The notes: generated from the letters alone by a model not told the origin. A stretch of DNA of 64,000 nt from Macrostomum lignano (GCA_002269645.1 NIVC01003855.1:9534-73533); one strand, 5' to 3'; counted from the first letter of the stretch, positions 491 through 46,490 are shown. Numbers and translations are program-made.

Positions 491-639
491 GTGAGGGGCT
501 TTGGTGAATTTTTAGAGTTCGCACCTGTTGCGTTTTGTAGATTCCATGATGATGCGATCCCAGATACTGTCTTAGCCTTAGGGATTTAAATTCTAAAATC
601 CTGAAGATCTCGTGTTGTAATCTCCGTGATTCTAATGCT

Positions 640-4192: not shown

Positions 4193-4244
4193 CTTACAAG
4201 AGTAGCCAATTATCTCTCCGCTATATTTTTCATCGCTTGCCCAG

Positions 4245-4866: not shown

Positions 4867-4894
4867 GTGAGTACCGGCTCGGCACTATGAATCT

Positions 4895-18822: not shown

Positions 18823-18892
18823 CTGTTGGGTTGTTAATTGGTCAGTAAGGTCTGATAACAGGTAAAATCTTCGTGCCTCTACGGGGTCTTAC

Positions 18893-19299
18893 CTGCCCTT
18901 TCCTTCACGGCTGAATCCTTCGTAAAGCAGCTGCTTAGTCTTCGGCGAAATCGGCCGCATCTCCACGCACAGCTCTTGACTGTCGCCCTGCAGTCGGTCG
19001 ATAGCGTCCAGGACCTCTTGGTTCTCGTCTCGCTTGGGCTTCAAATGCTTCTGCGACTTGAACTTGTCCACCTGTTCGCGCAGCTCCTCTGTCATGGTTG
19101 GCGCCATCTCGAGCTTCTTTCTGAACACCTCCATCTGGCGGCTCTTGTGCTCGACAGGCTGGCCGCCTTGCTCAGCGGCCAATCGTTCCCGTTCGGCTTT
19201 CTTCTTCATGTACCAGTGCAGCTGGCTGTCCGTCTCTTTAGTGTAGCGCTCCTCCAGGCTCTTCTGAGCCGCAATGTCCGCTGGATAGTTCCTGGACAT
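18893..19299 (-). CDS. SPMIP1/ATP6V1FNB-like protein, exon 1 (total 212 aa)
   Basis: ATG at 19299. EMRPISPKTKQLLYEGFSREGKGR resembles the family motif EMYPVPP.TRALLYEGISH..QGR. Donor AG|GTAAGA, 70-nt intron, phase 2 restored. Confidence 0.85.
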
Positions 19300-20694: not shown

Positions 20695-21295
20695 GGCGCC
20701 AATATTTGGTGTCTTCGTTTGCGCCCCTGCCTCTTGGTTGGCGCCCCTGCCTCTTGGTTGGCGCCCCTGCCTCTTGGTTGGCGCCCCTGTCTATTGGTGG
20801 GCGCCCCTGTCCCCTGGTGGGCGCCCCTGTCTTCTGGTTGGCGCCCCTGTCTCCTGGTGGGCGCCCCTGTCTTCTGGTTGGCGCCCCTGTCTCTTGATTG
20901 GCGCCCCTGTCTTCTGGTGGGTGCCCCTGTCTATTGTTGGGCGCCCCTGTCTCTTGGTTGGCGCCCCTGCCTCTTGGTTGGCGCCCCTGTCTCCTGGTGG
21001 GCGCTCCTGTCTCCTGGTGGGCGCCCCTGTCTCTTGGTGGGCGCCCCTGTCTTCTGGTTGGCGCCCCTGTCTCCTGGTTGGCGCCCCTGTCTTCTGGTGG
21101 GTGCCCCTGTCTCTTGATTGGCGCCCCTGTCTTCTGGTGGGTGCCCCTGTCTATTGTTGGGCGCCCCTGTCTCTTGGTTGGCGCCCCTGTCTCTTGGTTG
21201 GCGCCCCTGCCTCTTGGTTGGCGCCCCTGTCTCCTGGTGGGCGCTCCTGTCTCCTGGTGGGCGCCCCTGTCTCTTGGTGGGCGTCCCTGTCTCTC
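20695..21295. repeat. 20-bp GC-rich minisatellite (GCGCCCCTGTCTCTTGGTTG)
   Basis: Exact period of 20; it produces the CLLVGAP ORFs. Confidence 0.97.
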
Positions 21296-24722: not shown

Positions 24723-25157
<435 letters not shown>

Positions 25158-25476
25158 CCCTGCCTTTTCATAACCATATTGGCACTGAGGTGCTTTAGCC
25201 AGCCTAACAACCAGTTGCTATACCCAAAACTGACACACGCTAAGCCTGAAGAGACCACCCTCTGCCTCTGCCTCACTCTCAATGGCATAACAGCGAAGCG
25301 TATTTATTATTTGCTGAGCACCGCAGTTTAGAATGCCACAGGTATTTCTGAATAAAGTTAGCTACCGTGTATTCTGCATACTAAACAAAAATTAGCACTA
25401 AATTCTTTTGTTTCATTGTGCCTTTACAATAAAATATTGAGCGGTCATTCTGGCTTTCTCTGTTTCTCACAAAAGC

Positions 25477-25513
<37 letters not shown>

Positions 25514-27173
25514 GCATTTCCCCTCCAACATTGCGACTGGGAAAAAGTACAAACTGGGCCTGTGCCACGAAAGCTAAGATGACTGTCGCCAAGGCCCAGG
25601 CTTTTTGAATAGTTGATTTCTGCATTTCTGCTCCGCGTCTTCTTCTGCTGATCCTGCAATTCCATTTTCTGCTGCTTTAACCGCTGTAGAAAGCAGCAAT
25701 TTCTGAGCAAAGCCGGGGATTTGAGCAGTCCCTGGCTGAGTGCACTTGGCCTGCTGGGAGGCTGGGATAATTTCTGATATCTGGAAGGCATAGGATTGGG
25801 CAAGATGGTTCAAGAACTATCAGATATAATATTTTTAAGATATTCGCAACAAAACAACTGCTTTTAGAAGTGATTGACTGCTTCTCTGCTCTGGATTCAA
25901 TGCGGGCCTCTAACGGAACGTGACTTCCGTTTGATTTTGTAATGAAATAATAATTTGGGTATATTATACAACTGCAGAGAAAGAGATTATATACATGAGT
26001 ATATATATAACTTCTCAGAAACTGACGGCCTTTGCCTGAATAGAAGGTGCGTGACTTCTGCTTCATTTAAATTATGGGTCTGCAGTTATCCCATTGGGAA
26101 GTCTTTAATCCCATTGTGGGATTAACTTTAATGTAAATATTGAAGCGGAATTTAATCATACTCTCAAACCGAAGCTTTGAAAAAGAATGAGTCAGGTTCC
26201 TACTGGCCGGGGTCAGCAGGTCTGGCCATAGACTATAGCTTTCATAGTAAGTAAGAAGAAGAAATTTTTCAAGTGCCTGGGAATGACTCAGGCATTGGCT
26301 TCATATCCATCAAACTCTTGTATTCATTCCTGAGCACTGTTTTGTCCGCTTTGTGTAGCCAATATTTGTTTTGCTTTTTAAAGTCGAAGTATATATATAT
26401 AATAGTTTCAATTGGTAAGCCTGTGCAACCAATTATAATATTATAATGCCTAATTTGCTATATGCGCTACTTACAGTAAGAGACTAAGAATTTTCGGTAG
26501 CTTTTTTTTACTGAACTAAAAACTCTATATTTAGTATATGGATATTATAATAATTATTAATGCTTTTATAATTAAAGTAGAGTAGCTCCTAACAGTTGTG
26601 GATTAGTCTGAAGAGTACACAATCTTTTACATAGTTGCATAATTATTATTATTAGTAATGGTTTCAAAAACCTGGTACCTAGAAAGCGATGCTTCAACAG
26701 AAATCAGCATATTCATGCGAGTGGGAGAGAGGAGTAAGAGCTAGATTAAGCACACATGGACACTCGGTCAAGTGTGTGTGAGTGTCTGTGTGTGCCACAC
26801 GGAGAGCTGGCCATGGTGGACCTAGGAATTACTGATCGTTCAATCGATGCAGCTTGACACTTTAGAGGTGAGAGATACGGGACAGAGAGAAATCAACAAC
26901 TCTCATTCCCAATGCTAGCGAGGAGAGAATCCGCTGACTAACTCTGCAGACCTGAGCTCCCCGCTGACTGCTCCCGATTGGTCGGAACAGCTCTCGGCCC
27001 TGCAGTAGCCAGGGCAAGTCTGTCCCAAAAGTTGAGCCTCACCGCTCACTCTGAGCTCCCTGTTTAGATATCAGAAAGCACACCGGAACATCTAACTGGG
27101 TGTAAAAGCTGCCTCTCAAATCCACAAACAAGTGCAGAAAAGAAAATTCGAGTTTCATAAATTCGCTGCAAGC

Positions 27174-27239
27174 ATGTCTTCGGTTCAAGAGCTGGTCAAT
27201 CTAAAGAAGAAAGCCAAGAGAAGGCGTCGAACTGGAGGA
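27174..27239 (+). CDS. Cys-less pentameric ligand-gated ion channel, exon 1 (MSSVQELVNLKKKAKRRRRTGG)
   Basis: ATG at 27174, in-frame TAA upstream at 27093. Donor GGA|GTAAGT, phase 0, joins exon 2. Confidence 0.65.
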
Positions 27240-27517
27240 GTAAGTGCTAGCAATTATTTGCACCTGACAGCCAGCTGTGTAGAGCTGTACTGAGGGGCAG
27301 TATCGTCATAATGTTAGACCATTTAGCAGCATGCGATACTACCTGGCAAACAGTTTGTAGTATTGGGAAAAGTGTGTTCACGTCTGTCTGTCTATGAGAA
27401 GTCGGAGCCGCTGTCGCCTTGTGTCAGTGGGATACGCTCGTAGTCAAGGCTGCTTGCGACTGTCACCTTGAATTTGTGGCACTTCTAAAAATTACTCTTA
27501 AAACTCGCGAATCCTAG

Positions 27518-28021
27518 GACACATCCTACCAGGCCGTCGACACTGATGACGACTGCTTCTCGAACAACAGCGCCGAGTTCAACTCGAACGAGTGCCTGAG
27601 CTCCGGCCACGGGCCGGCGGTTCACCGAGCGGCCAAAAGCGATTCGATAACTGGCGACGGTCGCGAAGCTGCCTCAACTGCTGGTCGACACGATGAAGCT
27701 GAGACAGCCGCCTTTGCGGCGGCGGCCGGCCTCCCAGATGCCTCGTCGACCGTTGAAGTCGACGAAGATGCCGATGCAGATGACAGGCAGCGAGGAGGCG
27801 ACGAGCTTCAACAACTGACAGACGCGGCGAGGTCGTTGAATCCGACTGCACGGTTGATCGAAGCTCTGGAGACTCTCAGAGACTCCATCAACGACAACAC
27901 CAGCGTGGCGCTGCAGCAGACTCGAACTCGAAATCGACGACGGGGCACCTCGTCTGGCCAGGTCAACTACAAGAGCAGCGCCTTGAAGAGCGACGAGCGC
28001 TGCCGAATCCGCTCGGAGAAG
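27518..28021 (+). CDS. pLGIC exon 2 (low-complexity N-terminal extension)
   Basis: Acceptor ATCCTAG, 504 nt open, coding-like GC. Donor AAG|GTCAGG, phase 0. Confidence 0.75.
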
Positions 28022-28026
28022 GTCAG

Positions 28027-28510
28027 GGGATGGGGAAGCCGGGGGATGGGAAATTCGGGGATGGGGAAATCGGGGATGGGGAATTCGGGGATGGGAAATT
28101 CGGGCATGGGGAATTCGGGGATGGGGAATTCGGGCATGGGGAATTCGGGCATGGGGAATTCGGGGATGGGGAATTCGGGCATGGGGAATTCGGGGATGGG
28201 GAAATCGGGGATGGGGAATTCGGGGATGGGGAATTCGGGGATGGGGAATTCGGGGATGGGGAATTCGGGGATGGGGAATTCGGGGATGGGGAATTCGGGG
28301 ATGGGAAGTCAGGGGGTGGGGAAGTCTGGGGATAGAGAATTTGGGGTGTGAGAAGGTCAAGGAATGGGGAATTCGGGGATTTGGAAGTCAGGGGATGGGA
28401 AGTCAGGGATGGGGAAGTCAGGGGATGGGAAGTCAGGGAAGGGGAAGCCAGGGGATGGGAAGTCAGGGGATGGGAAGTCAGGGGATGGGAAGTCAGGGGA
28501 TGGGAAGTCG
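28027..28510. repeat. 15-bp G-rich minisatellite (GGGAATTCGGGGATG, then GGGAAGTCAGGGGAT)
   Basis: Begins directly after the exon 2 donor. Confidence 0.95.
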
Positions 28511-28809
28511 GAGCTTTGAAGCTACACCCAAAGCGTTGGGGCAGTTAATTGAAAGTCCGTGCTGATTACAGTTTTTCAATCAACTGAAAAATACAGGCAA
28601 GCCTCTGGAGGAAATCAAATTATAAGTAGAGGATATGCAAATTTCAAATCGCTTTTCAGCTTTACATTGTAAGTTTCCGAGATGCTAGTTAAAAAACAAC
28701 TGCTTTTGACAGCTCTGAGTTCGGTTCCTGTCATTGCATTTTCCTGTCATTGCATCTTCTCGAATTCTACAGCTTTTTGACTCATCCTTTTTGAAAAATG
28801 AAATATGCT

Positions 28810-30335
28810 TGAGGCAGTCCCCAATGACCAATGACTCATTTAGACAGTGCCAGTCCCCAATGACCAATGACTCATTTAGACAGTGCCAGTCCCCAATGAC
28901 CAATGACTCATTTAGACAGTGCCAGTCCCTAATGACCAATGACTCATTTAGACAGTGCCAGTCCCCAATGACCAATGACTCATTTAGACAGTGTCAGTCC
29001 CTAATGACCATTGACTCATTTAGACAGTGCCAGTCCCTAATGACCCATTTAGACAGTGCCAGTCCCCAATGACCAATGACTCATTTAGACAGTGCCAGTC
29101 CCCAAAGACCAATGACTCATTTAGACAGTGCCAGTCCCCAATGACCAATGACTCATTTAGACAGTGCCAGTCCCCAAAGACCAATGACTCATTTAGACAG
29201 TGCCAGTCCCCAAAGACCAATGACTCATTTAGACAGTGCCAGTCCCCAATGACCAATGACTCATTTAGACAGTGCCAGTCCCCAATGACCAATGACTCAT
29301 TTAGACAGTGCCAGTCCCTAATGACCAATGACTCATTTAGACAGTGCCAGTCCCCAATGACCAATGACTCATTTAGACAGTGTCAGTCCCTAATGACCAT
29401 TGACTCATTTAGACAGTGCCAGTCCCCAATGACCATTGACTCATTTAGACAGTGCCAGTCCCTAATGACCAATGACTCATTTAGACAGTGCCAGTCCCCC
29501 ATGACCCATTTAGACAGTGCCAGTCCCCAATGACCCATTTAGAAAGTGCCAGTCCCCAATGACACATTTAGACAGTGCCAGTCCCTAATGACCAATGACT
29601 CATTTAGACAGTGCCAGTCCCCAATGACCAATGACTCATTTAGACAGTGCCAGTCCCCCATGACCAATGACTCATTTAGACAGTGCCAGTCCCCCATGAC
29701 CAATGACTCATTTAGACAGTGCCAGTCCCTAATGACCAATGACTCATTTAGACAGTGCCAGTCCCCAATGACTCATTTAGACAGTGCCAGTCCCCAATGA
29801 CCCATTTAGACAGTGCCAGTTCCCAATGACCCATTTAGACAGTGCCAGTCCCCTATGACCCATTTAGACAGTGCCAGTCCCAATGACCCATTTAGACAGT
29901 GCCAGTCCCCTATGACCCATTTAGACAGTGCCAGTCCCCAATGACCCATTTAGACAGTGCCAGTCCCCAATGACCCATTTAGACAGTGCCAGTCCCCTAT
30001 GACCCATTTAGACAGTGCCAGTCCCCAATGACCCATTTAGACAGTGCCAGTCCCCTATGACCCATTTAGACAGTGCCAGTCCCCAATGACCCATTTAGAC
30101 AGTGCCAGTCCCCAATGACCCATTTAGACAGTGCCAGTCCCCTATGACCCATTTAGACAGTGCCAGTCCCCAATGACCCATTTAGACAGTGCCAGTCCCC
30201 AATGACCCATTTAGACAGTGCCAGTCCCCAATGACCCATTTAGACAGTGCCAGTCCCCTATGACCCATTTAGACAGTGCCAGTTCCCAATGACCCATTCA
30301 GACAGTGCCAGTCCCCTATGACCCATTTAGACAGA
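28810..30335. repeat. 36-bp then 29-bp minisatellite (GACAGTGCCAGTCCCCAATGACC[AATGACT]CATTTA)
   Basis: The unit loses 7 bp from ~29790 onward. Confidence 0.96.
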
Positions 30336-30375
30336 AACATACTCGCTGACGCATTGTAAAACCGCCAATTCTCAG

Positions 30376-30504
30376 GTGGTGGTGGAGATCCGAGTCGTAT
30401 TCCTAAAGATCGGCGAGATCGATACTCTGAAAGAGCTTTATCACGCTGACGCCTTTATTCAAGCGAAATGGAAGGAACCACTGCTCGAGGGTCGAAGTCC
30501 CGAG
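30376..30504 (+). CDS. pLGIC exon 3 (beta1-beta2: VVVEIRVVFLKIGEIDTLKELYHADAFIQAKWKEP)
   Basis: CTCAG acceptor, GTAAGC donor, 129 nt, phase 0-0. V.V.....I..ID......F.AD......W.D/EP pattern of pLGIC ligand-binding domains. Confidence 0.92.
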
Positions 30505-30730
30505 GTAAGCAATAGCGATGCGAACATAGACTTAGAACATTTCACTTCGTAAGTATCCATAAAAAGTTCTTAAATAGCATAGACAAGCCAAGTTACAGAA
30601 GGGTGTCCTCAGTCGCTCTCATTATGAATGGGGCCCTGAAAACGACCCATTAGACTTATCCACAGAACTGACTCTCACGTCACCGCGACCCTTGGTTCGA
30701 TTTCGTGCGCGGCCTTGCACGTTCATTTTG

Positions 30731-30855
30731 GGGGAGGGGGTTGTTGTGCTTTTCACAGACCATGAGACCCAACCCCCCAGGGCACAGAAAGTGTACATTC
30801 CTGACGATTAGAAAGTCAAAGGGCCGATGTACACCCTGTGTGAGCGTGTGTATGA
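30731..30855 (+). mobile_element. SINE-like dispersed repeat, copy B, running into a (GAGT)n tail
   Basis: Reverse complement aligns with 35341-35465 over ~130 bp. Confidence 0.6.
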
Positions 30856-31195
30856 GTGAGTGAGTGAGTGAGTGAGTGAGTGAGCGAGTGAGTGAGTGAG
30901 TGAGTGAGTGAGTGAGTGAGTGAGTGAGTGAGTGAGTGAGCGAGTGAGTGTGAGCGAGTGAGCGAGTGAGAGAGTGTGAGCGAGTGAGTGAGTGTGAGCG
31001 AGTGAGTGAGTGAGTGAGTGAGTGAGTGAGTGAGTGAGTGAGTGAGTGAGTGAGTGAGTGAGTGAGTGAGTGAGTGAGAGAGTGTGAGCGAGTGAGTGAG
31101 TGTGAGCGAGTGAGTGAGTGAGTGAGTGAGTGAGTGAGTGAGAGAGTGTGAGCGAGTGAGTGAGTGAGTGAGTGAGTGAGTGTGAGTGAGTGCGT
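30853..31195. repeat. (GAGT)n microsatellite
   Basis: Direct reading. Confidence 0.97.
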
Positions 31196-31864
31196 GCCTG
31201 AGTACAGTATTGGAGTGTTTGTATGTTGCTCAGTAGTCAGCGGAATGGGTTAGAAAAAGAGACAGGTTAGCGGCAGACCTCCTGTAGTTTTTACGATTAT
31301 TAATATCAACTATTCACTTTTCTGTAGGCTCATCTGTGACATTAAAAACTCACGGATTCCAGCCTAACAATATATACCAGTCTGAACTATCAAACAGGCT
31401 TATCCATGAAGATGCAGACAGTTCTAATGGGCTGCATATGAATAGTTGAATACGCCATTTACCAAGTTTTTTCTCTGGTAACAGCTTACACAGAAAGGCT
31501 ATTTACATATAGCAGCTATGCAGACTCCACGCTTAACACATTCGGTTTTTCTTCATCAATTTACTTATCCCAAGGCCATTAGCTATGGTTAGTCCAATAA
31601 GACAACTCAAACTTGCACACCGAGTTATGCCTTTTCAGGGGAAATATTCGGCACGGGATCTACTAAACATGCCCTTTGTAAGAGCACATTGCCCATTTCC
31701 ACGAAAACGCGCATTTTAAAACAAATTATTGCATTTTTGTGTGATCAGTTTGTAAATGAAGCTAAATTGCATTGTCTGTGTAAGCTCTGGGTATGTCATC
31801 CCATTTTGCCAGTTCCTTTCAGTAATTTATCTATTCACATGACATCTATATTTTCCCGTATTGA

Positions 31865-32920
31865 CTAGACTTGTAATCCATTCTAATCATTATTCATGTA
31901 AACTAGACTAGCAATCCATTCTAATCATTATTCATGTAAACTAGACTAGCAATCCATTCTAATCGTTATCCCATGTAAACTAGACTTGTAATCCATTCTA
32001 ATCATTATTCATGTAAACTAGACTAGCAATCCATTCTAATCATTATTCATGTAAACTAGACTAGCAATCCATTCTAATCATTATTCATGTAAACTAGACT
32101 AGCAATCCATTCTAATCATTATTCATGTAAACTAGACTAGCAATCCATTCTAATCATTATTAATGTAAACTAGACTAGCAATCCATTCTAATCATTATTC
32201 ATGTAAACTAGACTAGCAATCCATTCTAATCATTATTCATGTAAACTAGACTAGCAATCCATTCTAATCATTATTCATGTAAACTAGACTAGCAATCCAT
32301 TCTAATCATTATTCATGTAAACTAGACTAGCAATCCATTCTAATCATTATTCATGTAAACTAGACTAGCAATCCATTCTAATCATTATTCGTGTAAAATA
32401 GACTAGCAATCCATTCTAATCATTATTCGTGTAAACTAGACTAGCAATCCATTCTAATCATTATTCGTGTAAAATAGACTAGCAATCCATTCTAATCATT
32501 ATTCGTGTAAAATAGACTAGCAATCCATTCTAATCATTATTCGTGTAAAATAGACTAGCAATCCATTCTAATCATTATTCATGTAAACTAGACTAGCAAT
32601 CCATTCTAATCATTATTCATGTAAACTAGACTAGCAATCCATTCTAATCATTATTCGTGTAAAATAGACTAGCAATCCATTCTAATCATTATTCGTGTAA
32701 AATAGACTAGCAATCCATTCTAATCATTATTCGTGTAAAATAGACTAGCAATCCATTCTAATCATTATTCGTGTAAAATAGACTAGCAATCCATTCTAAT
32801 CATTATTCATGTAAACTAGACTAGCAATCCATTCTAATCGTTATCCCATGTAAACTAGACTAGCAATCCATTCTAATCATCATCCCATGTAAACTAGACT
32901 AGCAATCCATTCTAATCATT
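31865..32920. repeat. 38-bp minisatellite (TAAACTAGACTAGCAATCCATTCTAATCATTATTCATG)
   Basis: Period of 38 (31899 to 31937), head-to-tail, no spacers. Confidence 0.97.
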
Positions 32921-33984
32921 CTCCTATCTTGTCTAGATTGCTCATATTCATGGCTATGCATCAGCGCGACCGTATACTGCTGAGACGGATCAGCATGCAT
33001 GCTGAGTCCCAAGTCCAGGCTTTCGCCCATATTTCTGGCATCCCAAATGTTGAACAGCTACTGTTTCTCTCCCCCTGTCGGCCTGGCTGTCTGTTTCAGG
33101 CTCTCAGCTCCTCTCCCCTCAAACCTCCTGCCCGTCTGTTGGTGCATAATTTACAAGCCCAGCCTCTGCGCAGCCTCAGTCCAGAGCTGTCCCGCTGCCA
33201 ACAAATGGAAACAGCGAAAGCGTTCGCTCCCTTGGAGACAAAGAAATACTTCACATTTTTTGAGGAAGAACAGCGCGAAGAGTCGTGGGGACTAATTTCT
33301 GCTCCTGAAAGCCGCTACTTTCTGCTTAGAGAAAGGTGTGGGTAATTTCACGCCGCCTTCCTGCTAGCCCACTGCCCGTCAACTGAGTGGAGGGGTTGTT
33401 GTTGATGGCTTTGTATTATTAATGCAAACTATGTATATATATATATATATATACACATATATTGAGCTATGCTTGGAAGTGGGACATTACGCTTCTTATG
33501 TAAGTCGTGCGCCAAACTTCAGGCTAAATAATGTTAGGTGGACTAACACAACAAAAAACTTTCCATGGCGGTTTTAGCTTATAGCTTAGTGTCATTTTTT
33601 ATTTTTCTATTCTATTTCTATCTAAAGAGCATAACTGCATGTACTATATCCAAAACTCCGTCGCAGCACTAACATAGTCCTGGTTAAAAGCAATCTGTAT
33701 TGGGAGAAGAGATATTTCTAGGAGGAACTGTATGGATCTATGCAGACTCTGCTCATAGAGCTCGCTCATGCGTTACTTTTGCTCGACCAAATGAACGATT
33801 TTGTTCTAATGTGTCACGCGGCAGCAGAGCCCATCAGATCTCGGTATCGTGACAATTTAAATTTTTTTTTATAACAAGCTTATGTATCTTTCTTGAATGT
33901 ATAAAATTTTTCATTTTATTTATTAATTCGTGCAATCAATTTAAGACACTACCAAATCATATTCAACCAATGTTTCTACTTTTG

Positions 33985-34440
33985 TCTATAGTCAAGATAC
34001 TGTCTATGGTCAAAACATCATCTATGGTCAAAACACTGTCTATGGTCAAACACTGTCTATGGTCAAAACACCGTCTATGGCCAAAACACCGTCTGTGGTC
34101 AAAACACCGTCTATGGTTAAAACACCGTCTATAGTCAAGATACTGTCTATGATCAAAACATCGTCTATGGTCAAAACACCGTCTATGGTCAAAACACCGT
34201 CTATGGTCAAACACTGTCTATGGTCAAAACACCGTCTATGGTCAAAACACCGTCTATCGTCAAAACACTGTCCATGGTCAAAACACTGTCTATGGTCAAA
34301 CACTGTCTATGGTCAAAACACTGTCTATGGTCAAAACACCGTCTGTGGTCAAAACACTGTCTATTGTCAAAACACCGTCTGTGGTCAAAACACCGTCTAT
34401 GGTCAAAACACCGTCTGTGGTCAAAACACTGTCTATTGTC
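33985..34440. repeat. 17-18-bp minisatellite (GTCTATGGTCAAAACACC)
   Basis: Direct reading. Confidence 0.95.
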
Positions 34441-35340
34441 TGTGGCACAGGCACAGGCAGGGCATTGAGTTTAAGACAGAGCACTTAGATTGAGACAAGT
34501 CATGCCCGCCCTGCAAATGGAGCTGGAGAGTCCACAGGTCGAAGTCTACGGGATTGGCGTTCCATTGTACTCAGTTCGTCAGGCGCAGATGTCATTACAC
34601 GGTTGCTAAGAGTGCAGCCTGGTTTGCTCAGACACTGCGCTTCCTGCCCCGCCGCCGTATTGAATTGAATTCTCGACTTCTTAAATAGCTACAAAGAAGA
34701 ATGCTATGCTTTTTCAGAACGGATTTGTGTTCTCTGTGTCTATGGGCAAAACACGAGTCATTGATTCAGTGTTCAGAGCCGGCGAGGGGTCGAGTCTGTG
34801 CAGTGGTAAATCCTCAATAGCTAGGCGCTTAGTTAAACAAGTTCCGTCTCAGTTTCCCTATTTTTGGAAGCTGTTGAGACTTTAACCAGCTCATGAAATT
34901 ACTTCCAACTATTTTTTCCGACTTTACTTCATGATTTAAAATTAGTTAGCAATAGAAAAGTAAAAAAAACAAATGACTGACTACTCAAGATCCGTGCTGC
35001 AATATTGATTCCGCATTTCTGGGTGTTCACTCTTTTCCCAGGGACGGCTTTTAGCATTGGAAAACAGGCTCTCACTTGAATACTTCTACAAAATGTGTAA
35101 CAAGGATATTAATCCAACCTGTTCTATATTTAGCTTTGCTACCGCATTTGAAAAGTCCAATTCAGTTTTAGCCCATTCGAGAAGATACTTCGACACGGAG
35201 ATGCACTTTTGCTCTCGGACTAGGAATCGCGTTTTGTTAGGAAAAGTATTAATTTACAAAAAAACAATAATGGTAATATTTCAGGAAGATTTTAGGCTGA
35301 CTCCTGAGCTTACAAGCGCGCCAATATTGTACACAGGCAC

Positions 35341-35465
35341 TCATACACACGCTCACACAGGGTGCACAGCGGCCCTTTGACTTTCTAATCGTCAGACATG
35401 TACCTCTGTGCCTTGGGGTCTGGGTCTCATGGTCTGTGAATCGCATGACAATTCCCCTCCCCCAA
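35341..35465 (-). mobile_element. SINE-like dispersed repeat, copy C
   Basis: Inverted relative to copy B in the same intron. Confidence 0.6.
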
Positions 35466-35971
35466 ACGTATGGCTTGATTATGAATCTGTTGAGGTAATA
35501 TATAATTAAATTTTTTTTCAAACATTCGCACATTGCCCTTCACGACCCCTGTTAGCGGCGGCCTGAAGCTAATCCCTTTGATTGCTCGCAGCCTATGACT
35601 AATCCAGCGTATCCCGGGGAGGAAATATTCTGGTGACCCGGGGATCGAGAAAAATCCCTCAAAATGTCTTTTATGCTTGCCGCGTTAATCTTTCTGCTAA
35701 CTAAGACGGAAATCTGTTTGCACTTTCCATAGTTGCTCTCCATCTGCTGGGCCATCATGCATGGGTCTGCGCGAATGACTTCGGGCAGGAACTACTGAAG
35801 TATACGAGTTCTGTTGAGCTTTACTTTATGCAAAGGATAAGCTGCGTTTGGAATTATCGGTGTAGCCTTTAGAGTGACAAAAACTTCGAAAAAGAAATTG
35901 CAATAGGAAACTATTTGATACTGCAATTTTTTCATGGATATTTATGACGGATTGCAAATCGAGGCGATGGT

Positions 35972-36062
35972 TGACAGCGGCCCTGACTTTCTCATCATCA
36001 AGCATGTACACTCTCTGTGTGCCTTGGGTGTTGGACCTCAATGGGCATAAACCTCGCACGAC
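35972..36062 (-). mobile_element. SINE-like dispersed repeat, copy D (truncated, diverged)
   Basis: ACAGCGGCCCTGACTTTCT...CATGTACAC...TGTGCCTTGGG. Confidence 0.5.
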
Positions 36063-36151
36063 AAAGCTCCCAAAATTTATGTGGAATCGAACCCAGGTTC
36101 TCTCTGGATTCAATTGTAAATAATTCCATGCATCCAACTGAAAATTTACAG

Positions 36152-36352
36152 GAGTTAAAAACAGTCGACCTTGAGAAATACTGGAATCCATTAATCTACA
36201 TTGACAATATTCTCAACGAGACCAAGGAAGCTACTTGGGTCGTTGGTCAGCACGACCCTCTGTCATCCGATGTCTACATTGTGGAGCGGCGCCGGATTAA
36301 GGGAGTTTTCCTAGAAACCCTGGAGCTCAACGATTTCCCGTTGGATGTGCAG
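36152..36352 (+). CDS. pLGIC exon 4 (loop A YWNP to the Cys-less signature loop LELNDFPLDVQ)
   Basis: TTTACAG acceptor, GTGAGA donor, 201 nt, phase 0-0. W.P.I.I.N and FPxDxQ motifs; no cysteines. Confidence 0.95.
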
Positions 36353-36564
36353 GTGAGACAAATTAATGAACGAATAATGCGAGTGTCCACTTTGAAACAC
36401 TGTCACTCTATTTGAGTATTTGAAGTTACCGCTATCAACACAATGTCCCATGATTATGTGTGACCACTACCAACACAATTCCCCATGATCAAGTGACTGC
36501 TATCAACACAATGTCCCATGATTATGTGACCACTATCGACACAATGTCACAATTAAGTGATTGC

Positions 36565-37520
36565 TATTGTCTCAATGACATTCAGAGAAGGTGTCCACTA
36601 TTGTCTCAATGACATTCAGAGAAGGTGTCCACTATTGTCTCAATGACATTCAGAGAAGGTGTCCACTATTGTATGAATGACATTCAGAGAGAGTGTTCAC
36701 TATTGTCTCAATGACATTCAGAGAAGGTGTCCACTATTGTCTCAATGACATTCAGAGAAGGTGTCCACTATTGTCTCAATGACATTCAGAGAAGGTGTCC
36801 ACTATTGTATGAATGACATTCAGAGAGAGTGTTCACTATTGTCTCAATGACATTCAGAGAAGGTGTCCACTATTGTCTCAATGACATTCAGAGAAGGTGT
36901 TCACTATTGTCTCAATGACATTCAGAGAAGGTGTCCACTATTGTATGAATGACATTCAGAGAGAGTGTTCACTATTGTCTCAATGACATTCAGAGAGAGT
37001 GTTCACTATTGTCTCAATGACATTCAGAGAGAGTGTTCACTATTGTCTCAATGACATTCAGAGAGAGTGTTCACTATTGTCTCAATGACATTCAGAGAGA
37101 GTGTTCACTATTGTCTCAATGACATTCAGAGAGAGTGTTCACTATTGTCTCAATGACATTCAGAGAAGGTGTTCACTATTGTCTCAATGACATTCAGAGA
37201 AGGTGTCCACTATTGTATGAATGACATTCAGAGAGAGTGTTCACTATTGTCTCAATGACATTCAGAGAGAGTGTTCACTATTGTCTCAATGACATTCAGA
37301 GAGAGTGTTCACTATTGTCTCAATGACATTCAGAGAGAGTGTTCACTATTGTCTCAATGACATTCAGAGAGAGTGTTCACTATTGTCTCAATGACATTCA
37401 GAGAGAGTGTTCACTATTGTCTCAATGACATTCAGAGAGAGTGTTCACTATTGTCTCAATGACATTCAGAGAAAGTGCCCACTATTGTCTCAATGACATT
37501 CAGAGAAAGTGCCCACTATT
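36565..37520. repeat. 34-bp minisatellite (CTATTGTCTCAATGACATTCAGAGAAGGTGTCCA)
   Basis: Period of 34, no spacers. Confidence 0.97.
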
Positions 37521-37622
37521 CTCTGAATAGTCTTTTCACACTGCTGAGCCCACCACTAGCATTGCCACAGCGTGTTAATTTGTTAATCAAGTTCAAATTA
37601 GTTCCACACCGATCACTTTTAG

Positions 37623-37880
37623 GACCTGACAATCACGATCACATCCGAGCGACCAGACACAGAGATCGAGCTCATTCCAGACGAGGCGGAGATGAGCGGC
37701 ATCAATATTCAGACATTCGTTGATCAACAAGAGTGGCGCCTGCACGAGCACATTGAAGTTGAGAAGCGAACTCTGACCCAGGAGTTCTCCAGCACTATGA
37801 AGTCGCATCCGTGCTTAGCTGTGAGATGCAGAGCCGCTAGGAGGCCCGGTTACTTCTACTGGAATGTCTTTCTTATTATG
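37623..37880 (+). CDS. pLGIC exon 5 (beta7-beta10, pre-M1, start of M1)
   Basis: TTTTAG acceptor, GTGAGT donor, 258 nt. QQEWRL (EW motif) and ARRPGYFYWNVFLIM (pre-M1 RRxxYF). Confidence 0.95.
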
Positions 37881-38750
37881 GTGAGTTTCTAATCGAGTAG
37901 AACTCATATTAATTACTCGTATTCAAGGTTAATCCACTTGTCTCCTAATGTTCCCAATATTGGACTCTGATATATTATCCAAGATTGCTTCGTTAGTATT
38001 AGAGCTACACTGGCATGGAAAAGTTGACTTGACAGTAAGTTAAACAAACATAGCCTGTAATAGACTTACAGGCATGCAGCTGTAATGCTTCAACAAAGGA
38101 GACGATGCTATATAACCCGTTGCGTGCATCAATAGAGAACTTGTGTTAGATGGATTTGCACGCGATGGCTGCTTCAATGTGCCCTGCAGAGGAGGCCTAC
38201 AACTGCGGGTCCTTCATCTGGGAGAAAGAGCACAGAGAGAAATATAGGTAAAAGCGAACGGACTTGCAGGTAGGCGTGGCGCAAGTAATGCAGAATTGTT
38301 GACCAAAGCCAGGCTAATTAATGGCAAACAGCTGGTGGGAAATCAGCCTGCAGAGGCATCGGCGCCAGGTTTATGAAGTTGGGTTTGTTGATGCGTTGGC
38401 TAAACAATAGCTGTCAAGTTACAGTTGCCGTGCACTGGGTCAGTGTTGGCTGGTCCGTGTACTGTTATTCATGAGCCCAGTTCATTACTAGTGTTCACTT
38501 ACATTTTACATCAGGCATAGTTCATTTATTCAACGCTACCTTTGATGAAATATTTTGCTGCTCTTTCCAGTTCTGCTTGTTTACCATTTCCGAGTTTCTT
38601 GGCCTCTGACTTTTTTATTCATTTATAATTCAAAAGATTGTTGTATTTCTTGATGAAATAAGCAACTTAATCTCGGATGTATGGGTCATTGCTAGGTGGA
38701 ACATATAAGAGTAAAGAGTAGAGATTGCAGCTACAGTGGATAATACAGAG

Positions 38751-39422
38751 CAGGGGTCAGAAAACTTTTTACCCTAAAGGCCAGATAGAGAACCTAGAGC
38801 ATGACTGCGGGCCGGAGGAGGGGCAAAGAAGAGGAAATTGAGAAGAGAAATAGGAGAAAGGAGATAAATGAGACGAAAGGAGACGAGAGGAGAGAAAAGA
38901 TGAAATAGGAGAGAAGAGAGGAGAGAAGAGAAGAGAAGAGAAGGAGAGGAGAAGGTAAAGAAGATAGGAGATTAGAGAGGCGAGGAGAGGAGAGGAGAGG
39001 GTAGGGGAGGGGAGGAGAGGAGAGGAGAGGAGAGGAGAGGAGAGAAGAGGAGAGAGGAGAGGAGAGGAGAGGGTAGGGGAGGGGAGGAGAGGAGAGGAGA
39101 GGAGAGGAGAGGAGAGAAGAGGAGAGAGGAGAGGAGAGAAGAGAGGAGAGGAGAAGAGAGGGTAGGGGAGGGGAGGAGAGGAGAGGAGAGGAGAGGGTAG
39201 GGGAGGGGAGGAGAGGAGAGGAGAGGAAAAAAGAGAGGAGAGGAGAGGAGAGGAGAGAAGAGGAGAGAGGAGAGGAGAGGGAGGTGACAGGAGAGAGCTG
39301 AGAAGAGACACAAACCCTGAGCTGGCCGCATTGCTATTGTGAAGCTTCAAAAGACCCGAAGGCCGGATGAAGAGGCTTCGCGGGCCGCATGTGGTCCACG
39401 GGCCGGAGTTTGCCAACCCCTG
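38751..39422. mobile_element. hAT (Charlie/Buster-like) MITE with internal (GGAGA)n expansion
   Basis: Ends CAGGGGTCAGAAAACT ... AGTTTGCCAACCCCTG. Subterminal GGGCCGCATGTGGTCCACGGGCCG. Flanks ATACAGAG / AAATAGAG (6/8). Confidence 0.8.
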
Positions 39423-39618
39423 AAATAGAGTAAAGAGCGATGGTACGACGGTGGAGGTAAGAGCGAGAGTAAGACAGTGGCTCACTGTCACATACTCGTA
39501 GGTTTGATGTTATATATCTATATTTCATATTTCATATAAGACGTAACAATTAATAGCCTTTGCAACTTCGAAGTCCGAGATGAGCAATGGTTACAGTGAA
39601 CCCACGCCATCCGCTCAG

Positions 39619-39774
39619 TTCTTCATCACAGGCCTGTCATTTGCCACATTCGCTGTGGGAGCGGACAAGCCAGAGAGCCGATTGCAGCTGTCATTCACGC
39701 TGTTTCTCACCTCAGTGGCTTTCAAGTTCGTCATTAACCAGTCGCTACCAAAGATTTCCTACTTAACTTACATG
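39619..39774 (+). CDS. pLGIC exon 6a (M1 end, M2 pore helix, M2-M3 loop), alternative copy 1
   Basis: CGCTCAG acceptor, GTGAGA donor, 156 nt, phase 0-0. FFITGLSFATFAVGADKPESRLQLSFTLFLTSVAFKFVINQSLPKISYLTYM aligns to the GlyR/GABA-A R0'..L9'T..SLPKVSY pattern. Confidence 0.93.
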
Positions 39775-39844
39775 GTGAGAGTTGTTTACCTGAGCTCGTA
39801 CTTAGTTCAATCCTGTGCCTCCCTCTCTCGAACTCGTATTACAG

Positions 39845-40000
39845 TTCATGATATCCGGCCTGTCATTTGCCACGTTTGCTGTTGAACCAAATAAGTGCGA
39901 GTACAGGCTGAGGCTGAGCTTCACCCTGGTATTAACCAGCGTCACGTTCAAGTACGTGGTCGCGCAGTCGCTACCGAGAATCTCCTACCTGACCTACATG
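39845..40000 (+). CDS. pLGIC exon 6b (M1 end, M2 pore helix, M2-M3 loop), alternative copy 2
   Basis: ATTACAG acceptor, GTAAGG donor, 156 nt, phase 0-0. FMISGLSFATFAVEPNKCEYRLRLSFTLVLTSVTFKYVVAQSLPRISYLTYM. Confidence 0.92.
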
Positions 40001-40159
40001 GTAAGGCAGGCGGAACCTTCATATTAGTCCGGGCTTTTGAGGGTGAACGGTGGCTCCAAAACTGATTCCCGCAATTCGGAATCCAAATTAGTAAGGACGC
40101 CATGCACTCACAAAACGAGCAAATTTCGCTGGCAGCGGTAATTTGTTTTTTGAGACGGC

Positions 40160-41085
<926 letters not shown>

Positions 41086-41852
41086 TTAATCTATGTAGTT
41101 CCTGTGGATCATAACTGAGAAGCCGGAGAAAACCGTCTCTGAAACCGAAAGCGAGATTTGCACGATTTACAAGTGTAGTGTCCTTTAACTTTAGCTGTCC
41201 AATGTTCTCCCACTGATGGAGACAACATGGGGGATAGCGTGGACACGAGTGAGCTGGCAAAAAAGCGCTGAGGGGGTCCGGACGCAGGCTTCTGCTCAAA
41301 TCGATATGGGCGAACTAATTGATGGGTACTCCTCAGTCTCTAGGTCTGATAGATCTGATATCTACAGAGGTTTAACCTATACACCGATTACGAGTAGAAG
41401 GCGCTTTTTTACACTTGAATTAGTATAGACTCGCCGCTTGATTTCGACAAACAATCTGTCTGTCATGCAATTGCTCAGTCAATATATGATGGAAAAATGC
41501 AAAATATGTTAGTCACATCATCAAAACAGATTTAAAAAATCAAATAGCAGTAGCTTGTAGCTCAAACACTGAAGCCAAATCGATTTTAAAAAATTGTTAT
41601 TCTGGTTTGTCGTAGCTAAGCGAGTTTTACCCGATGGATTTCGTTTGAGCAGAAGCTGATTTGGGCGCAGCGAGTCCGGGGACCCCCTCGCCGTCACTCA
41701 GCAGGGGGTCCCGGCCGCCGAGAGCCCCACAAAAGCCCGGACATCCCGACGCGCATTGCAGAGCGGTTTTATTGCCTTGGATACTGATTAACGATTGGTA
41801 GTCGTTTTTTAAAGCACTTAGAAACTGAATGCGCCAATAAATCAAACGGGAT

Positions 41853-42430
41853 ATCAATCAATCAACCAATCAACCAATCAATCAATCAATCAGTCAATCA
41901 ATCAACTAATCAATTAATCAATCAATCAACCAACCAATCAATCAATCAACCAACCAACCAATCAATCAATCAATCAATCAACCAATCAATCAATCAACCA
42001 ACCAACCAATCAATCAACCAACCAACCAATCATTCAATCAATCAATCAATCAATCAATTAATCAACCAACCAACCAATCAATCAACCAACCAACCAATCA
42101 ATCAATCAACCAATTAATTAATCAATCAATCAATCAATCAATCAACAAATCAATCGATTAATAAATCATTCAATCAATAAATAAATCAATTGATCAATCA
42201 ATCAATCACTCAATAAATCGATCGATCTATTTATCCCTCCATCGATACATACATACATCCATCAATCAATCAATCAATCAATTAATTAATCAATCAAATC
42301 AATCAACAAATCAATAAATAAATAAATAAATAAATCAATCAATCAATCAAACAATTTATTAATCAATAAATCAACAAATCAATAAATAAATCAATCAATC
42401 AATAAACCAATTGATTAATAAACGAATCAA
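41853..42430. repeat. Degenerate (AATC)n/(AACC)n/(AAAT)n microsatellite
   Basis: Direct reading. Confidence 0.95.
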
Positions 42431-42954
42431 TCAATCAAATAATGAATCATTTGGAAATAGTGGACTAATTTCGGAAGTTAATTTACATCTTTTAATCAAT
42501 TTATCAATAAATTAATTATCAATTAATCAGTCAATGAAAGCTATCCCTGCTGTATCCAAGGTTAAGTTTTTCGCTCGAATGCGTGCCCTCGTATGCAGGA
42601 CGCCGCTTACATGTAAAGGTGCAAGAATTAAGAATGACACGAGCTCAGTGGCTTCATTGTCAGGAGTTTCTTAACAATTTTGGGCTTATTTACTATTTAT
42701 TTATTAATCAACGCGATTGAGGCTGATAGCGATGTCACGGATTTCAGAAAGTCGGAATTAAAAAAGTTTTGGTGCCAAAGCCATCGTGCATCGTGCAGTT
42801 GCATGCTAATATAAATTCTTGCCAACTCATGTGCATCCGAAACGATGTATCGTTTGAAAAAACGTTACCATGATTCAAATTCTCCATACATATTCACAGC
42901 AACCTCACAGTCTTAGACAAGCTTACAATCTGAAAAACTGGTAAAGCAACCTAT

Positions 42955-44750
42955 AACCTGTTAGACAGGAGAGCTTGACCTGTTATGCAGGAGAGTCTGA
43001 CCTGTTAGACAGGAGAGCTTGACCTGTTATGCAGGAGAGCTTGACCTGTTAGACAGGAGAGCTTGACCTGTTATGCAGGAGAGCCTGACCTGTTAGACAG
43101 GAGAGCTTGACCTGTTATGCAGGAGAGCCTGACCTGTTAGACAGGAGAGCTTGACCTGTTATGCAGGAGAGTCTGACCTGTTAGACAGGAGAGCTTGACC
43201 TGTTCTGCAGGAGAGCCTGACCATGTTAGACAGGAGAGCTTGACCTGTTCTGCAGGAGAGCCTGACCATGTTAGACAGGAGAGCTTGACCTGTTATGCAG
43301 GAGAGCCTGACCTGTTAGACAGGAGAGCCTGACCTGTTATGCAGGAGAGTCTGACCTGTTAGACAGGAGAGCTTGACCTGTTATGCAGGAGAGCCTGACC
43401 TGTTAGACAGGAGAGCTTGACCTGTTATGCAGGAGAGTCTGACCTGTTAGACAGGAGAGCTTGACCTGTTATGCAGGAGAGCCTGACCATGTTAGACAGG
43501 AGAGCTTGACCTGTTATGCAGGAGAGCCTGACCTGTTAGACAGGAGAGTCTGACCTGTTAGACAGGAGAGCTTGACCTGTTATGCAGGAGAGTCTGACCT
43601 GTTAGACAGGAGAGCTTGACCTGTTATGCAGGAGAGCCTGACCTGTTAGACAGGAGAGCTTGACCTGTTATGCAGGAGAGTCTGACCTGTTAGACAGGAG
43701 AGCTTGACCTGTTCTGCAGGAGAGCCTGACCTGTTAGACAGGAGAGCTTGACCTGTTATGCAGGAGAGCTTGACCTGTTAGACAGGAGAGCTTGACCTGT
43801 TATGCAGGAGAGTCTGACCTGTTAGACAGGAGAGCTTGACCTGTTATGCAGGAGAGCCTGACCTGTTAGACAAGAGAGCTTGACCTGTTCTGCAGGAGAG
43901 CCTGACCATGTTAGACAGGAGAGCTTGACCTGTTATGCAGGAGAGTCTGACCTGTTAGACAGGAGAGCTTGACCTGTTCTGCAGGAGAGCCTGACCTGTT
44001 AGACAGGAGAGCTTGACCTGTTATGCAGGAGAGCCTGACCTGTTAGACAGGAGAGCTTGACCTGTTATGCAGGAGAGCCTGACCTGTTAGACAGGAGAGC
44101 TTGACCTGTTATGCAGGAGAGCCTGACCTGTTAGACAGGAGAGCTTGACCTGTTATGCAGGAGAGTCTGACCTGTTAGACAGGAGAGCTTGACCTGTTCT
44201 GCAGGAGAGCCTGACCATGTTAGACAGGAGAGCTTGACCTGTTATGCAGGAGAGCCTGACCTGTTAGACAGGAGAGCCTGACCTGTTATGCAGGAGAGCT
44301 TGACCTGTTATGCAGGAGAGTCTGACCTGTTAGACAGGAGAGCTTGACCTGTTATGCAGGAGAGCCTGACCTGTTAGACAGGAGAGCTTGACCTGTTATG
44401 CAGGAGAGCTTGACCTGTTATGCAGGAGAGCTTGACCTGTTATGCAGGAGAGCCTGACCTGTTAGACAGGAGAGCTTGACCTGTTATGCAGGAGAGCTTG
44501 ACCTGTTATGCAGGAGAGCTTGACCTGTTATGCAGGAGAGCCTGACCTGTTAGACAGGAGAGCTTGACCTGTTATGCAGGAGAGTCTGACCATGTTAGAC
44601 AGGAGAGCTTGACCTGTTATGCAGGAGAGCCTGACCTGTTATGCAGGAGAGCCTGACCTGTTATGCAGGAGAGCCTGACCTGTTAGAAGGAACCCTGACC
44701 TGTTAGACAGGATAGCCAGGATATGTTAGACAAGAGAAGCTGACCTGTTA
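42955..44750. repeat. 22-bp minisatellite (GACCTGTTAKRCAGGAGAGCYT), alternating 44-bp dimer, ~80 units
   Basis: Period of 22 (43021 to 43043). Confidence 0.97.
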
Positions 44751-44785
44751 GACAACTACAACGCATGCTAAAAACTCACACGCAG

Positions 44786-45103
44786 GACAAATACGTACTC
44801 ATGTCTCTGGCCATTCTCTGCATTGTGAGCATCTGGCACGCGGTGGTAACTATGATCCAGCCTCCTAGCCTCGGCGGCGGTCGCAACGCTACATCGCAGC
44901 TTCATCATCCTCGAGTCCTGAGCTCAGGAGGCGGCGCCGCCGCTCTCCGAGACTGCCTACTGCAGGGGGAGACTGGCGAGCCGTGCTCGAAACACCTGCG
45001 CCGGATGGAGATGGTGAACAAAATCGAGAAGGACGTGTTCATTAGCTTTGGCGCGCTGTACGTACTGGCTCACGTGATCTTTATCTTCTGGCTTTATTAC
45101 GAT
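44786..45103 (+). CDS. pLGIC exon 7 (M3, M3-M4 loop, M4)
   Basis: CGCAG acceptor gives YM|DKYVL (pLGIC xDxY). Two hydrophobic helices. GAT|GTGAGT donor, 318 nt. Confidence 0.93.
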
Positions 45104-45408
45104 GTGAGTGAGGCTCGGTTTTTTACACTGAGTATTTCTTCCAGTGTTGTTTTTATCCGAAAATCGATAAATGGCATTGGCTAGTCAAGTACTTTTTCAA
45201 GGATTGTGGAAAAAGTTGCTTGAAAGCCTATTTTTTTGCGGTAAAATTGATTAGTAAATTATGCACTTACACGTTTTTATCAAACTTATCAAAGCACTTA
45301 AATTGGCATATAACCAACAGTATAGCATATCGGGTTTGTATCTTGGTAATTAGCTTGCATTGATGAAAGCTATAAAGTTTGGTAAAACAAATCCGAAAAT
45401 TTTTTCAG

Positions 45409-45456
45409 GCTTGTCGAAGACGTCGCGAGATGCACAAGAAGGACAGAGAGTACAAG
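45409..45456 (+). CDS. pLGIC exon 8 (ACRRRREMHKKDREYK)
   Basis: TTTTTCAG acceptor, AAG|GTGAGC donor, 48 nt, phase 0-0. Confidence 0.8.
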
Positions 45457-46379
45457 GTGAGCTGCCGATCAATAATTATCTTTGTTATTTGAACTGTGAG
45501 CAATTTGGTAGTATAAATATGACTTTAGTTTTTTTGGTGCCACGGAAATTACATCTATTTTGCACTTTGTGCAAATTTTTGCACTTTAGAACACCGTAGG
45601 AATGACTGACCATTTTACAACCATCTTATCATTTATAGTTGCAGCTCATCATTGCAATATTCATTTTATTCGAAGTGTGCCTTGAAACATTTATGAATTG
45701 TTTTGACATTAAATATCACTATAAGTAGTTCCACTCCTTTTGTGTTCGACTTTGAATTTTTTGACAGAAACTAGAAATCGTAGTGGAGTTCTTCGATTAA
45801 ACCATGCCTTGATTTTTTTGCAGTCGGATTTACAAATAGTTTTTACTTCTGCGTACGCAAGGTCTCTGATAAATTGTTTTCATAGTGTGGAAAGTCACAA
45901 AGGGCTGTCAGACAGATTGATATTGATGTGTACTAATTTCTGCTATTTCGCGTTTGATTTCGAAAAACTGAAACAGCTTTGGCCCCAAATTCAAAATTAG
46001 TCAGCAATGCTTTGTCAATCTAATCATTGAGTGTATGAAGGCATTTTTAGTTTCAAGCAATTGACCGTTTAGATTTAGTTTCCACTAAACTAAAAATCAT
46101 CATTTTTTCCTCCAAACATATCGTTGAAAATGTCGACTTGCTTCGTTAAAGCATAGTTTAGTATTCATGTTCTATTGAATTAATACAACTGTAAAAACGA
46201 ATATGGAATCTTAGATTTGTGCATTATTGAGAAGCAGTGTATTTTCTGCAACGAGTAAATTTGCATGCATTAATTTCACCAACCCTCCTCGCGTCTCGTA
46301 CAATGCAATTTATAAAAAAATGGGAATAAAGCTGCTTCTTTTCCTACCAAATTTCGCTCCCCATTCTCAAATTGCAAAG

Positions 46380-46490
46380 GATTGGCTCGCTAAAAAGCAG
46401 GAATGGCACGCGAAGGCCTTGGAGTTGGCCGCAGCTCAACACGGCGTTAGTCGGCCATCCTCGTCAGCCGCTATTGCGCTGTCTGTGTGA
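46380..46490 (+). CDS. pLGIC candidate terminal exon 9a (DWLAKKQEWHAKALELAAAQHGVSRPSSSAAIALSV*)
   Basis: GC-rich coding-like island in AT-rich sequence, in phase after a TTGCAAAG acceptor (weaker AAG). Confidence 0.55.
   Translation, partial: DWLAKKQEWHAKALELAAAQHGVSRPSSSAAIALSV

Follow-up and report, generated by a model that had tools for sequence, protein, structure and literature searches.

The 64,000-nucleotide stretch of Macrostomum lignano DNA analysed here (GCA_002269645.1 NIVC01003855.1:9534-73533; hereafter the window, with positions counted from its first letter) carries on its plus strand a gene for a subunit of an ion channel of the pentameric, ligand-gated type (pLGIC), and the orientation of this subunit in the membrane is our main concern. 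Six-frame translation, combined with tblastn searches with homologues, delineates nine coding exons spanning 27174-46490 and a product of 596 amino acids. GT-AG borders and phase 0 are found at all nine, with no frame disruption, and an in-frame stop at 27093 lies 81 nt 5' of the ATG at 27174, where the coding sequence starts as MSSVQELVNLKKKAKRRRR. We regard it as secure that this is an intact gene encoding a Cys-less pLGIC subunit.

Exon 1 (27174..27239, MSSVQELVNLKKKAKRRRRTGG) holds the start codon followed by a polybasic stretch, shows no hydrophobic signal sequence and ends in a GT donor. Exon 2 (27518..28021) codes for 168 polar, acidic and basic residues, which include a conserved long N-terminal helix (residues 131-165, 27842-27946), a motif common to annelid and nemertean homologues (LxPTxRLIxAxExLR) and a basic linker leading to beta-strand 1. 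The ligand-binding domain is spread over three exons: exon 3 (30376..30504, VVVEIRVVFLKIGEIDT...) encodes beta-strands 1-2, exon 4 (36152..36352) the middle of the domain with the first part of the cysteine-free 'Pro-loop' (FLETLELNDFPLDVQ), and exon 5 (37623..37880) the remainder, along with a lone conserved cysteine and the basic flank preceding M1 (together CRAARRPG, 37827-37850) and the start of M1 itself. The pore-forming exon is present in two alternative versions, 6a (39619..39774) and 6b (39845..40000). The former encodes the end of M1, the M1-M2 loop GADKPES, M2 (with 0' Arg, 2' Gln and 9' Leu) and the M2-M3 loop; the latter is distinguished by the loop EPNKCEY, 2' Arg and the sequence TSVTFKYVVAQ. 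M3, a 58-residue M3-M4 loop and M4 are all found in exon 7 (44786..45103), and exon 8 (45409..45456) carries the post-M4 motif ACRRRREMHKKDREYK, whose family-wide form is C[KR]RRRxMxxKD[RK]EY. The first-pass annotation had placed its features correctly within this gene but ended it at 45456. The tail is encoded about 1 kb further on by a ninth exon (46380..46490, DWLAKKQEWHAKALELAAAQHGVSRPSSSAAIALSV and the stop codon); proteins of Owenia and Lineus have homologous tails, and a paralogous locus has a homologous tail exon.

A public M. lignano protein (P0001) matches the peptides of exons 1, 2, 5 and 6a at 100% and that of exon 4 at 98.5%, and is a faulty model of this gene, with both exon 6 copies concatenated and the protein truncated. 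A second protein (P0121), 86% identical, represents a paralogue and maps to the same M. lignano assembly (GCA_002269645.1).

The assignment of the product to the pLGIC superfamily is supported by several lines of evidence. Pfam Neur_chan_LBD (PF02931) is matched with an E value of 9.3e-9 and 35.5 bits (cut-off 26 bits), and PF02932 with only 20 bits, below its cut-off of 28.1 bits; the best matches in a sequence search of the PDB are ELIC (1e-15) and the GABA-A and glycine receptors. Residues 119-596 were modelled as a monomer with AlphaFold2 (AF2) from an alignment of 94 sequences, with a mean pLDDT of 86.5, a pTM of 0.75 and about 10 beta strands. The model comprises a 35-residue N-terminal helix (model positions 13-47, with a block of pLDDT 83-96 over positions 11-40), a beta-sandwich, M1-M3, and finally a single 76-residue helix made up of the pre-M4 segment, M4 and the post-M4 motif and tail (the last four helices being at model positions 258-280, 286-310, 319-344 and 387-462). 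The post-M4 motif extends M4 as one helix with pLDDT >90. Mean hydropathy of M1-M4 ranges from 1.4 to 2.2, and Foldseek retrieves the glycine receptor (GlyR), GABA-A receptors and GLIC at E values of about 5e-21 with TM-scores of 0.7-0.8. The fold of the model is that of a pLGIC, with four transmembrane helices coming after a beta-sandwich ligand domain; the model carries no information on membrane orientation.

The hallmarks of the superfamily, namely the FPxD loop, the pre-M1 Arg, the 0' Arg and the 9' Leu gate, are all present. By sequence, the gene is a member of the metazoan Cys-less, or Pro-loop, clade described by Jaiteh, Taly & Henin 2016 (PMC4795631), of which a schistosome branch was reported by Johnson et al. 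2023 (PMC9874803). Homologues (225 at E <1e-5 in one search, 224 cluster representatives at E <1e-30 in another; 60-94% identical) come from flatworms, annelids, nemerteans, molluscs, brachiopods, rotifers and, more distantly, sea urchins. Trematode and cestode members are 57-76% identical to the window protein. Nothing separates this gene from the published family, with which it shares the cysteine-free FPxD loop, the lack of a second Cys-loop, the spiralian and echinoderm distribution and, as in flatworm members, Glu at M2 -2'; only our reading of the orientation differs from the published one. Both of these papers call the beta-sandwich extracellular, and neither discusses signal peptides, charge bias or orientation; ligand and function are given as unknown in PMC9874803, which also relates that the planarian homologues gabrg1/2 are expressed in mechanosensory neurons and give seizure-like phenotypes under RNA interference (Ross et al. 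2018, as cited there).

The first-pass annotation had proposed that this subunit is an inverted channel with a cytosolic ligand-binding domain, on the grounds that it has no signal peptide, no Cys-loop disulfide, a glycosylation sequon and a cysteine pair in the M3-M4 loop, and a basic cluster followed by a tail after M4. Each of these features is borne out in the complete protein. The 190 polar or charged residues that precede beta-strand 1 contain no hydrophobic stretch (the maximum mean Kyte-Doolittle value over 15 residues is 0.92). The loop equivalent to the Cys-loop (FLETLELNDFPLDVQDLTI, residues 286-304) is free of cysteine, and so without the disulfide-bonded C-x13-C of a strict Cys-loop, and retains the FPxD core (DFPLDVQD, residues 294-301; in alignment A1 the Pro is invariant and the Phe and Asp are conserved in at least 90% of sequences). 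In the M3-M4 loop lie N-A-T at residues 472-474 (44885-44893) and C-x9-C at residues 495-505 (44954-44986). Beyond M4, ...YYD is directly followed by ACRRRREMHKKDREYK, with 8 Lys or Arg in 16 residues and a juxtamembrane Cys, and then by a 36-residue tail. These features recur in about 170 homologues of several phyla, which argues that they are more than chance.

To follow them through the family, 249 proteins were aligned to the window protein, and the 174 with a complete ligand domain and M1-M4 (window protein included) were kept. Controls were 112 bacterial ELIC-like proteins, retrieved by a protein search with the ELIC sequence, and 10 vertebrate GlyR alpha1 proteins; the latter, being the 10 of 120 sequences that passed the motif anchors and all orthologues, illustrate the canonical bias rather than sample it broadly. 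At the pore, 0' Arg is found in 174/174 and 9' Leu in 172/174. The -2' residue varies, being mostly Gln (102/174) and Glu in 28; in the window gene it is Glu in both alternative exons (PES-R in 6a, CEY-R in 6b), so the channel is probably cation-conducting. Pfam scans of ten unusually long family members revealed no fused cytosolic domain; these models look like gene-model fusions or low-complexity sequence.

Signal peptides are nearly absent from the family. A signal-peptide-like N-terminus was scored when, upstream of beta-strand 1, the first 45 residues held a 9-residue window of mean Kyte-Doolittle hydropathy >2.2. One is found in 3/135 family members as against 95/106 ELIC-like proteins, and a transmembrane-like 19-mer precedes the ligand domain in only 4/174. 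In two RNA-derived contigs (L001 and L002) the 5' untranslated region is about 1 kb long. In-frame stops lie 447 and 357 nt upstream of the start, and nothing hydrophobic is encoded in the interval; such closed 5' ends show that N-termini without signal peptides are not merely gene-prediction errors. Two of the three signal-positive members (P0006 and P0008) have a hydrophobic stretch upstream of, or replacing, the polar N-terminal region of their close relatives, and their start sites look doubtful. The only convincing N-terminal anchor in the family, a basic cluster followed by about 21 hydrophobic residues, belongs to the third, P0198, whose tail is acidic rather than basic and whose charge bias, as defined below, is just +1; it may be a genuine N-anchored variant, and perhaps a relative with canonical orientation. 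P0198 is an intronless member encoded on an ENA metagenome contig (L004, 571-1935), and its transmembrane-like segment lies directly before the ligand domain.

The distribution of positive charge points in the same direction. In the family, the 15 residues preceding M1 carry a net charge of +3.2 and the 15 following it one of +0.7, and in 95% of members the N flank is the more positive. The charge-difference rule for signal anchors holds that the more positive flank stays cytosolic, and the N-terminus would thus be kept in the cytosol. As a second measure, Lys and Arg lying no more than 15 residues from a helix end were counted for the segments on the ligand-domain side, namely pre-M1, the M2-M3 loop and post-M4, and those of the M1-M2 and M3-M4 loops were subtracted. 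The resulting bias is +7.0 +/- 2.8 in the family (positive in 98%) and +5 for the window protein; ELIC-like proteins give -0.3 +/- 1.5, with a maximum of +3, and GlyR alpha1 gives -7.6. Much the same can be said of the region beyond M4: at least three consecutive Lys or Arg occur within 12 residues of M4 in 120/174 members, and the C-terminal tail has a median length of 48 residues (at least 25 in 94%), compared with 0 in ELIC-like proteins and 7 in GlyR; that of the window protein measures 53. No further transmembrane segment was detected in the tails or loops of the family, except in one fused gene model, and R[RK]x[ST] motifs are over-represented in the tails, with 29 occurrences where shuffles give 12 +/- 3.4. 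The juxtamembrane Cys was considered as a palmitoylation mark and rejected, as its presence in only 48/174 members means that it is not a family feature.

The M3-M4 loop bears marks that suggest an exoplasmic location. Among the 21 members with M3-M4 loops of at least 40 residues, mostly flatworms, N-x-S/T occurs 55 times against 25.8 +/- 4.5 in composition-preserving shuffles, a count that 0/500 shuffles reach, and 55 times against 30 for the reversed motif S/T-x-N (binomial p 0.009; 20 members, the fused model P0126 being omitted). Elsewhere the two motifs are equally frequent, with 211 against 201 in the N-regions and 85 against 81 in the tails. A pair of Cys residues immediately preceding M4 is a recurrent feature of Macrostomum and other flatworm paralogues, and some M3-M4 loops are Thr-rich and mucin-like. 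In the ligand domain itself only one cysteine is conserved, at position 369 and in 72% of members; no conserved partner was found for it, no other ligand-domain column containing at least 15% Cys. Sequons are depleted in that domain (95, where shuffles give 163 and the reversed motif 180); this depletion was left unused, since conserved columns of related sequences can cause it. Two objections to an inverted channel that the first-pass annotation had itself raised prove to be real but weak: the NET (N255, 36215-36223, exon 4) and NTS sequons of the N-terminal part exist, but neither is conserved and N-terminal sequons are at chance level, and the basic residues of the M3-M4 loop are confined to the stretch just before M4, and to flatworm members.

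All of the sequence tests that were run agree with an N-in/C-in arrangement and none contradicts it. We therefore favour, with a probability of roughly 0.55, a topology in which the ligand-binding domain and both termini are cytosolic and the M3-M4 loop is exoplasmic. The inverted arrangement would belong to the whole clade rather than be special to this gene, and we put at about even odds the broader proposition that all metazoan Cys-less pLGICs, in spiralians and echinoderms alike, are inserted upside-down relative to known pLGICs and gated by an intracellular ligand or state. On this hypothesis M1 would act as a type II (N-in) signal anchor, because there is no signal peptide and its N-flank is more positive than its C-flank, and the N-terminal region and ligand-binding domain would remain in the cytosol. 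Two loops, M1-M2 and M3-M4 (the latter with the sequon and Cys pair), would be exposed to the lumen or cell exterior, and the basic post-M4 helix and C-tail would lie back in the cytosol; the pentamer, in the plasma membrane or in an organelle, would be gated from its cytosolic side by an intracellular ligand or condition. Loss of the disulfide would leave the ligand domain able to fold in the reducing cytosol. Signal-peptide loss in a disulfide-free ancestor of bacterial type could have flipped the protein, with the basic post-M4 tail then fixing the orientation. The family was already known; the predicted cytosolic ligand-binding domain appears to be new, and a literature search on pLGIC topology, signal-peptide absence and the positive-inside rule returned no report of an inverted pLGIC.

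Several considerations weigh against this interpretation. The orientation of every member rests on sequence statistics, and to our knowledge all characterised pLGICs have the ligand domain on the extracellular or periplasmic side. Part of the positive charge on the ligand side is structural: ELIC has a baseline of 3.75 Lys/Arg there, and all pLGICs share an invariant Arg before M1. The acidic Pro-loop (ELxDFPxD) could also serve as a partner for the post-M4 RRR. The bias of the window protein is +5 and not +7 because the 15 residues before M4 are also basic in this and other flatworm members. The p-values for sequons and motifs are overstated, since the sequences are related and the counts not independent, and the signal-peptide test is a hydrophobicity heuristic, not SignalP. 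An alternative first exon may be spliced to exon 2 in this gene. Finally, rare proteins such as pro-neuregulin-1 do translocate long N-terminal domains without a signal peptide.

The strongest competitor, clearly less probable in our view yet far from negligible, is that these proteins are ordinary Cys-less pLGICs with the ligand domain outside, inserted by way of an unannotated signal-peptide exon or with M1 as a reverse (N-out) anchor, and that the basic post-M4 helix is an extracellular structural 'latch' packed on the acidic Pro-loop. Such an orientation is that of all solved and characterised pLGICs, including the PDB matches of this protein, and the pore keeps the 0' Arg and -2' Glu that usually sit at the cytoplasmic mouth. 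The basic pre-M4 segment of flatworm members resembles a short MA helix, the post-M4 helix of the AF2 model lies next to the ligand domain and prolongs M4 in ordered form, so that its charges could be structural, and the neuronal phenotypes of the planarian homologues, as summarised in PMC9874803, fit neurotransmitter receptors. Against this, the same signal-peptide exon would have to have escaped over 130 gene models and transcripts across seven phyla, and it is absent from the two transcripts with closed 5' ends. Insertion by M1 in the N-out sense would require translocation of a folded, highly charged N-domain of 170-400 residues with a +3 N-flank, which goes against the charge-difference rule. 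The closest N-out relatives, the ELIC-like proteins, have signal peptides, no C-tail and no Lys/Arg bias, and the sequon enrichment and Cys pairs of the M3-M4 loop are left unexplained.

We consider it improbable that the protein is targeted elsewhere than to the endoplasmic reticulum (for example to mitochondria, or to the nuclear envelope via KKKAKRRRR) or has dual topology, in which case the rules of the secretory pathway would be inapplicable. The polybasic KKKAKRRRR does resemble a nuclear-localisation or lipid-binding motif, but conservation of this element does not extend beyond Macrostomum, the family has no shared amphipathic N-terminus of the presequence type, and a strong, uniform Lys/Arg bias favours a single orientation over a dual one. 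KKKAKRRRR occupies residues 11-19 (27204-27230) and could be read as either a monopartite nuclear-localisation or a polybasic lipid-binding motif; trematode and cestode orthologues, which start MSINFNKLF... or MAINFNKLF..., do not conserve it. It is very unlikely that the odd termini come from a decayed pseudogene or chimeric gene model and not from a real protein, in spite of the visibly wrong public model P0001 and the many minisatellites at the locus, given nine undisrupted phase-0 exons with GT-AG borders, the conservation of every exon, tail included, in other phyla, and the retention of the structure at the paralogous locus.

Like ELIC and GLIC, the family lacks the Cys-loop disulfide, has the same fold (TM-score 0.74) and, in most members, a short M3-M4 loop of 10-14 residues. 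ELIC-like proteins differ in having cleavable signal peptides (90% positive by the heuristic), a median of 0 residues after M4 and a Lys/Arg bias of -0.3, whereas the Cys-less family has a polar N-extension of 0-270 residues (in most members), the 35-residue N-terminal helix and a basic tail of 48 residues. Canonical Cys-loop receptors (GlyR, GABA-A, nAChR, 5-HT3) resemble it in subunit fold, in the W-x-P and FPxD motifs and in having the pre-M1 Arg and 9' Leu; they differ by their Cys-loop disulfide and signal peptide, by the glycosylation of their ligand domains, and by an M3-M4 domain that is large, basic and cytoplasmic and a C-terminus that is short and extracellular. Insect odorant receptors are seven-transmembrane proteins inverted relative to G protein-coupled receptors, and the CNG/HCN, IP3R and RyR channels are gated by cytosolic ligands. 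If the inverted topology predicted here holds, the likeness to these systems would be an analogy of orientation and ligand side only, with no homology.

Textbooks present pLGICs as extracellular receptors for neurotransmitters, and they are major targets of drugs and anthelmintics; we know of no report of one with a cytosolic ligand domain. Should the inverted topology be correct, it would account for the fact that no agonist has been reported for Cys-less channels (PMC9874803), because an externally applied ligand cannot reach a cytosolic site, and the search would turn to intracellular ligands and inside-out recording. The schistosome and tapeworm members would have to be reassessed as drug targets, since a drug must then enter the cell, and the family would provide a natural case of a large receptor-channel flipped by signal-peptide loss and the gain of a basic tail. 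If inversion fails, a conserved architecture without signal peptide and with a long N-terminal helix and a basic post-M4 helix is still unexplained.

The two versions of exon 6 form a tandem pair of 156 nt each, in the same phase and 73% identical to each other. Each covers the segment from the end of M1 to the M2-M3 loop; position 2' changes between the copies (Gln in one, Arg in the other), as does the M1-M2 loop. An equal pair, 98% identical copy for copy, is present at the paralogous M. lignano locus (L003), at 25824-25979 and 26019-26174. The pair thus predates the gene duplication, and both copies are under purifying selection, which suggests that 6a and 6b are spliced in a mutually exclusive manner. 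A 6a-like sequence is found in Owenia and a 6b-like one in Lineus. The DWLAKKQEW motif of exon 9 is common to annelid and nemertean proteins. The tail exon of the paralogue (L003, 31246-31353) ends ...ARRTSTVLVHAV*, which matches the RRTST(I/V)..H of Owenia and Lineus, a PKA-type site; the public model of the paralogue, P0121, seems to read through rather than splice to this exon.

Minisatellite or microsatellite arrays, one or more of them, are found in most introns of the gene (28026-44716); examples are 28026-28504 (a 15-mer), 28815-30334 (a 36/29-mer), 31864-32920 (a 38-mer), 36564-37528 (a 34-mer), 40160-41083, (ATCT)n/(TCTG)n, and 42956-44716 (80 copies of a 22-mer). Other repeat arrays in the window lie at 639-4192, 6076-7264, 10898-15752, 20712-21294 and 24724-25158, and most of the long spurious open reading frames of the region arise from arrays of these kinds. 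Two plus-strand exons of a ubiquitin carboxyl-terminal hydrolase (USP) are found upstream, at 69-494 and 4237-4890 (Pfam UCH, 7.8e-6 and 4.5e-4), separated by a 3.5-kb array of a 46-mer repeat. Between them and the channel gene, a minus-strand open reading frame of 136 amino acids (18889-19299) matches Pfam SPMIP1, sperm microtubule inner protein 1 (6.7e-9).

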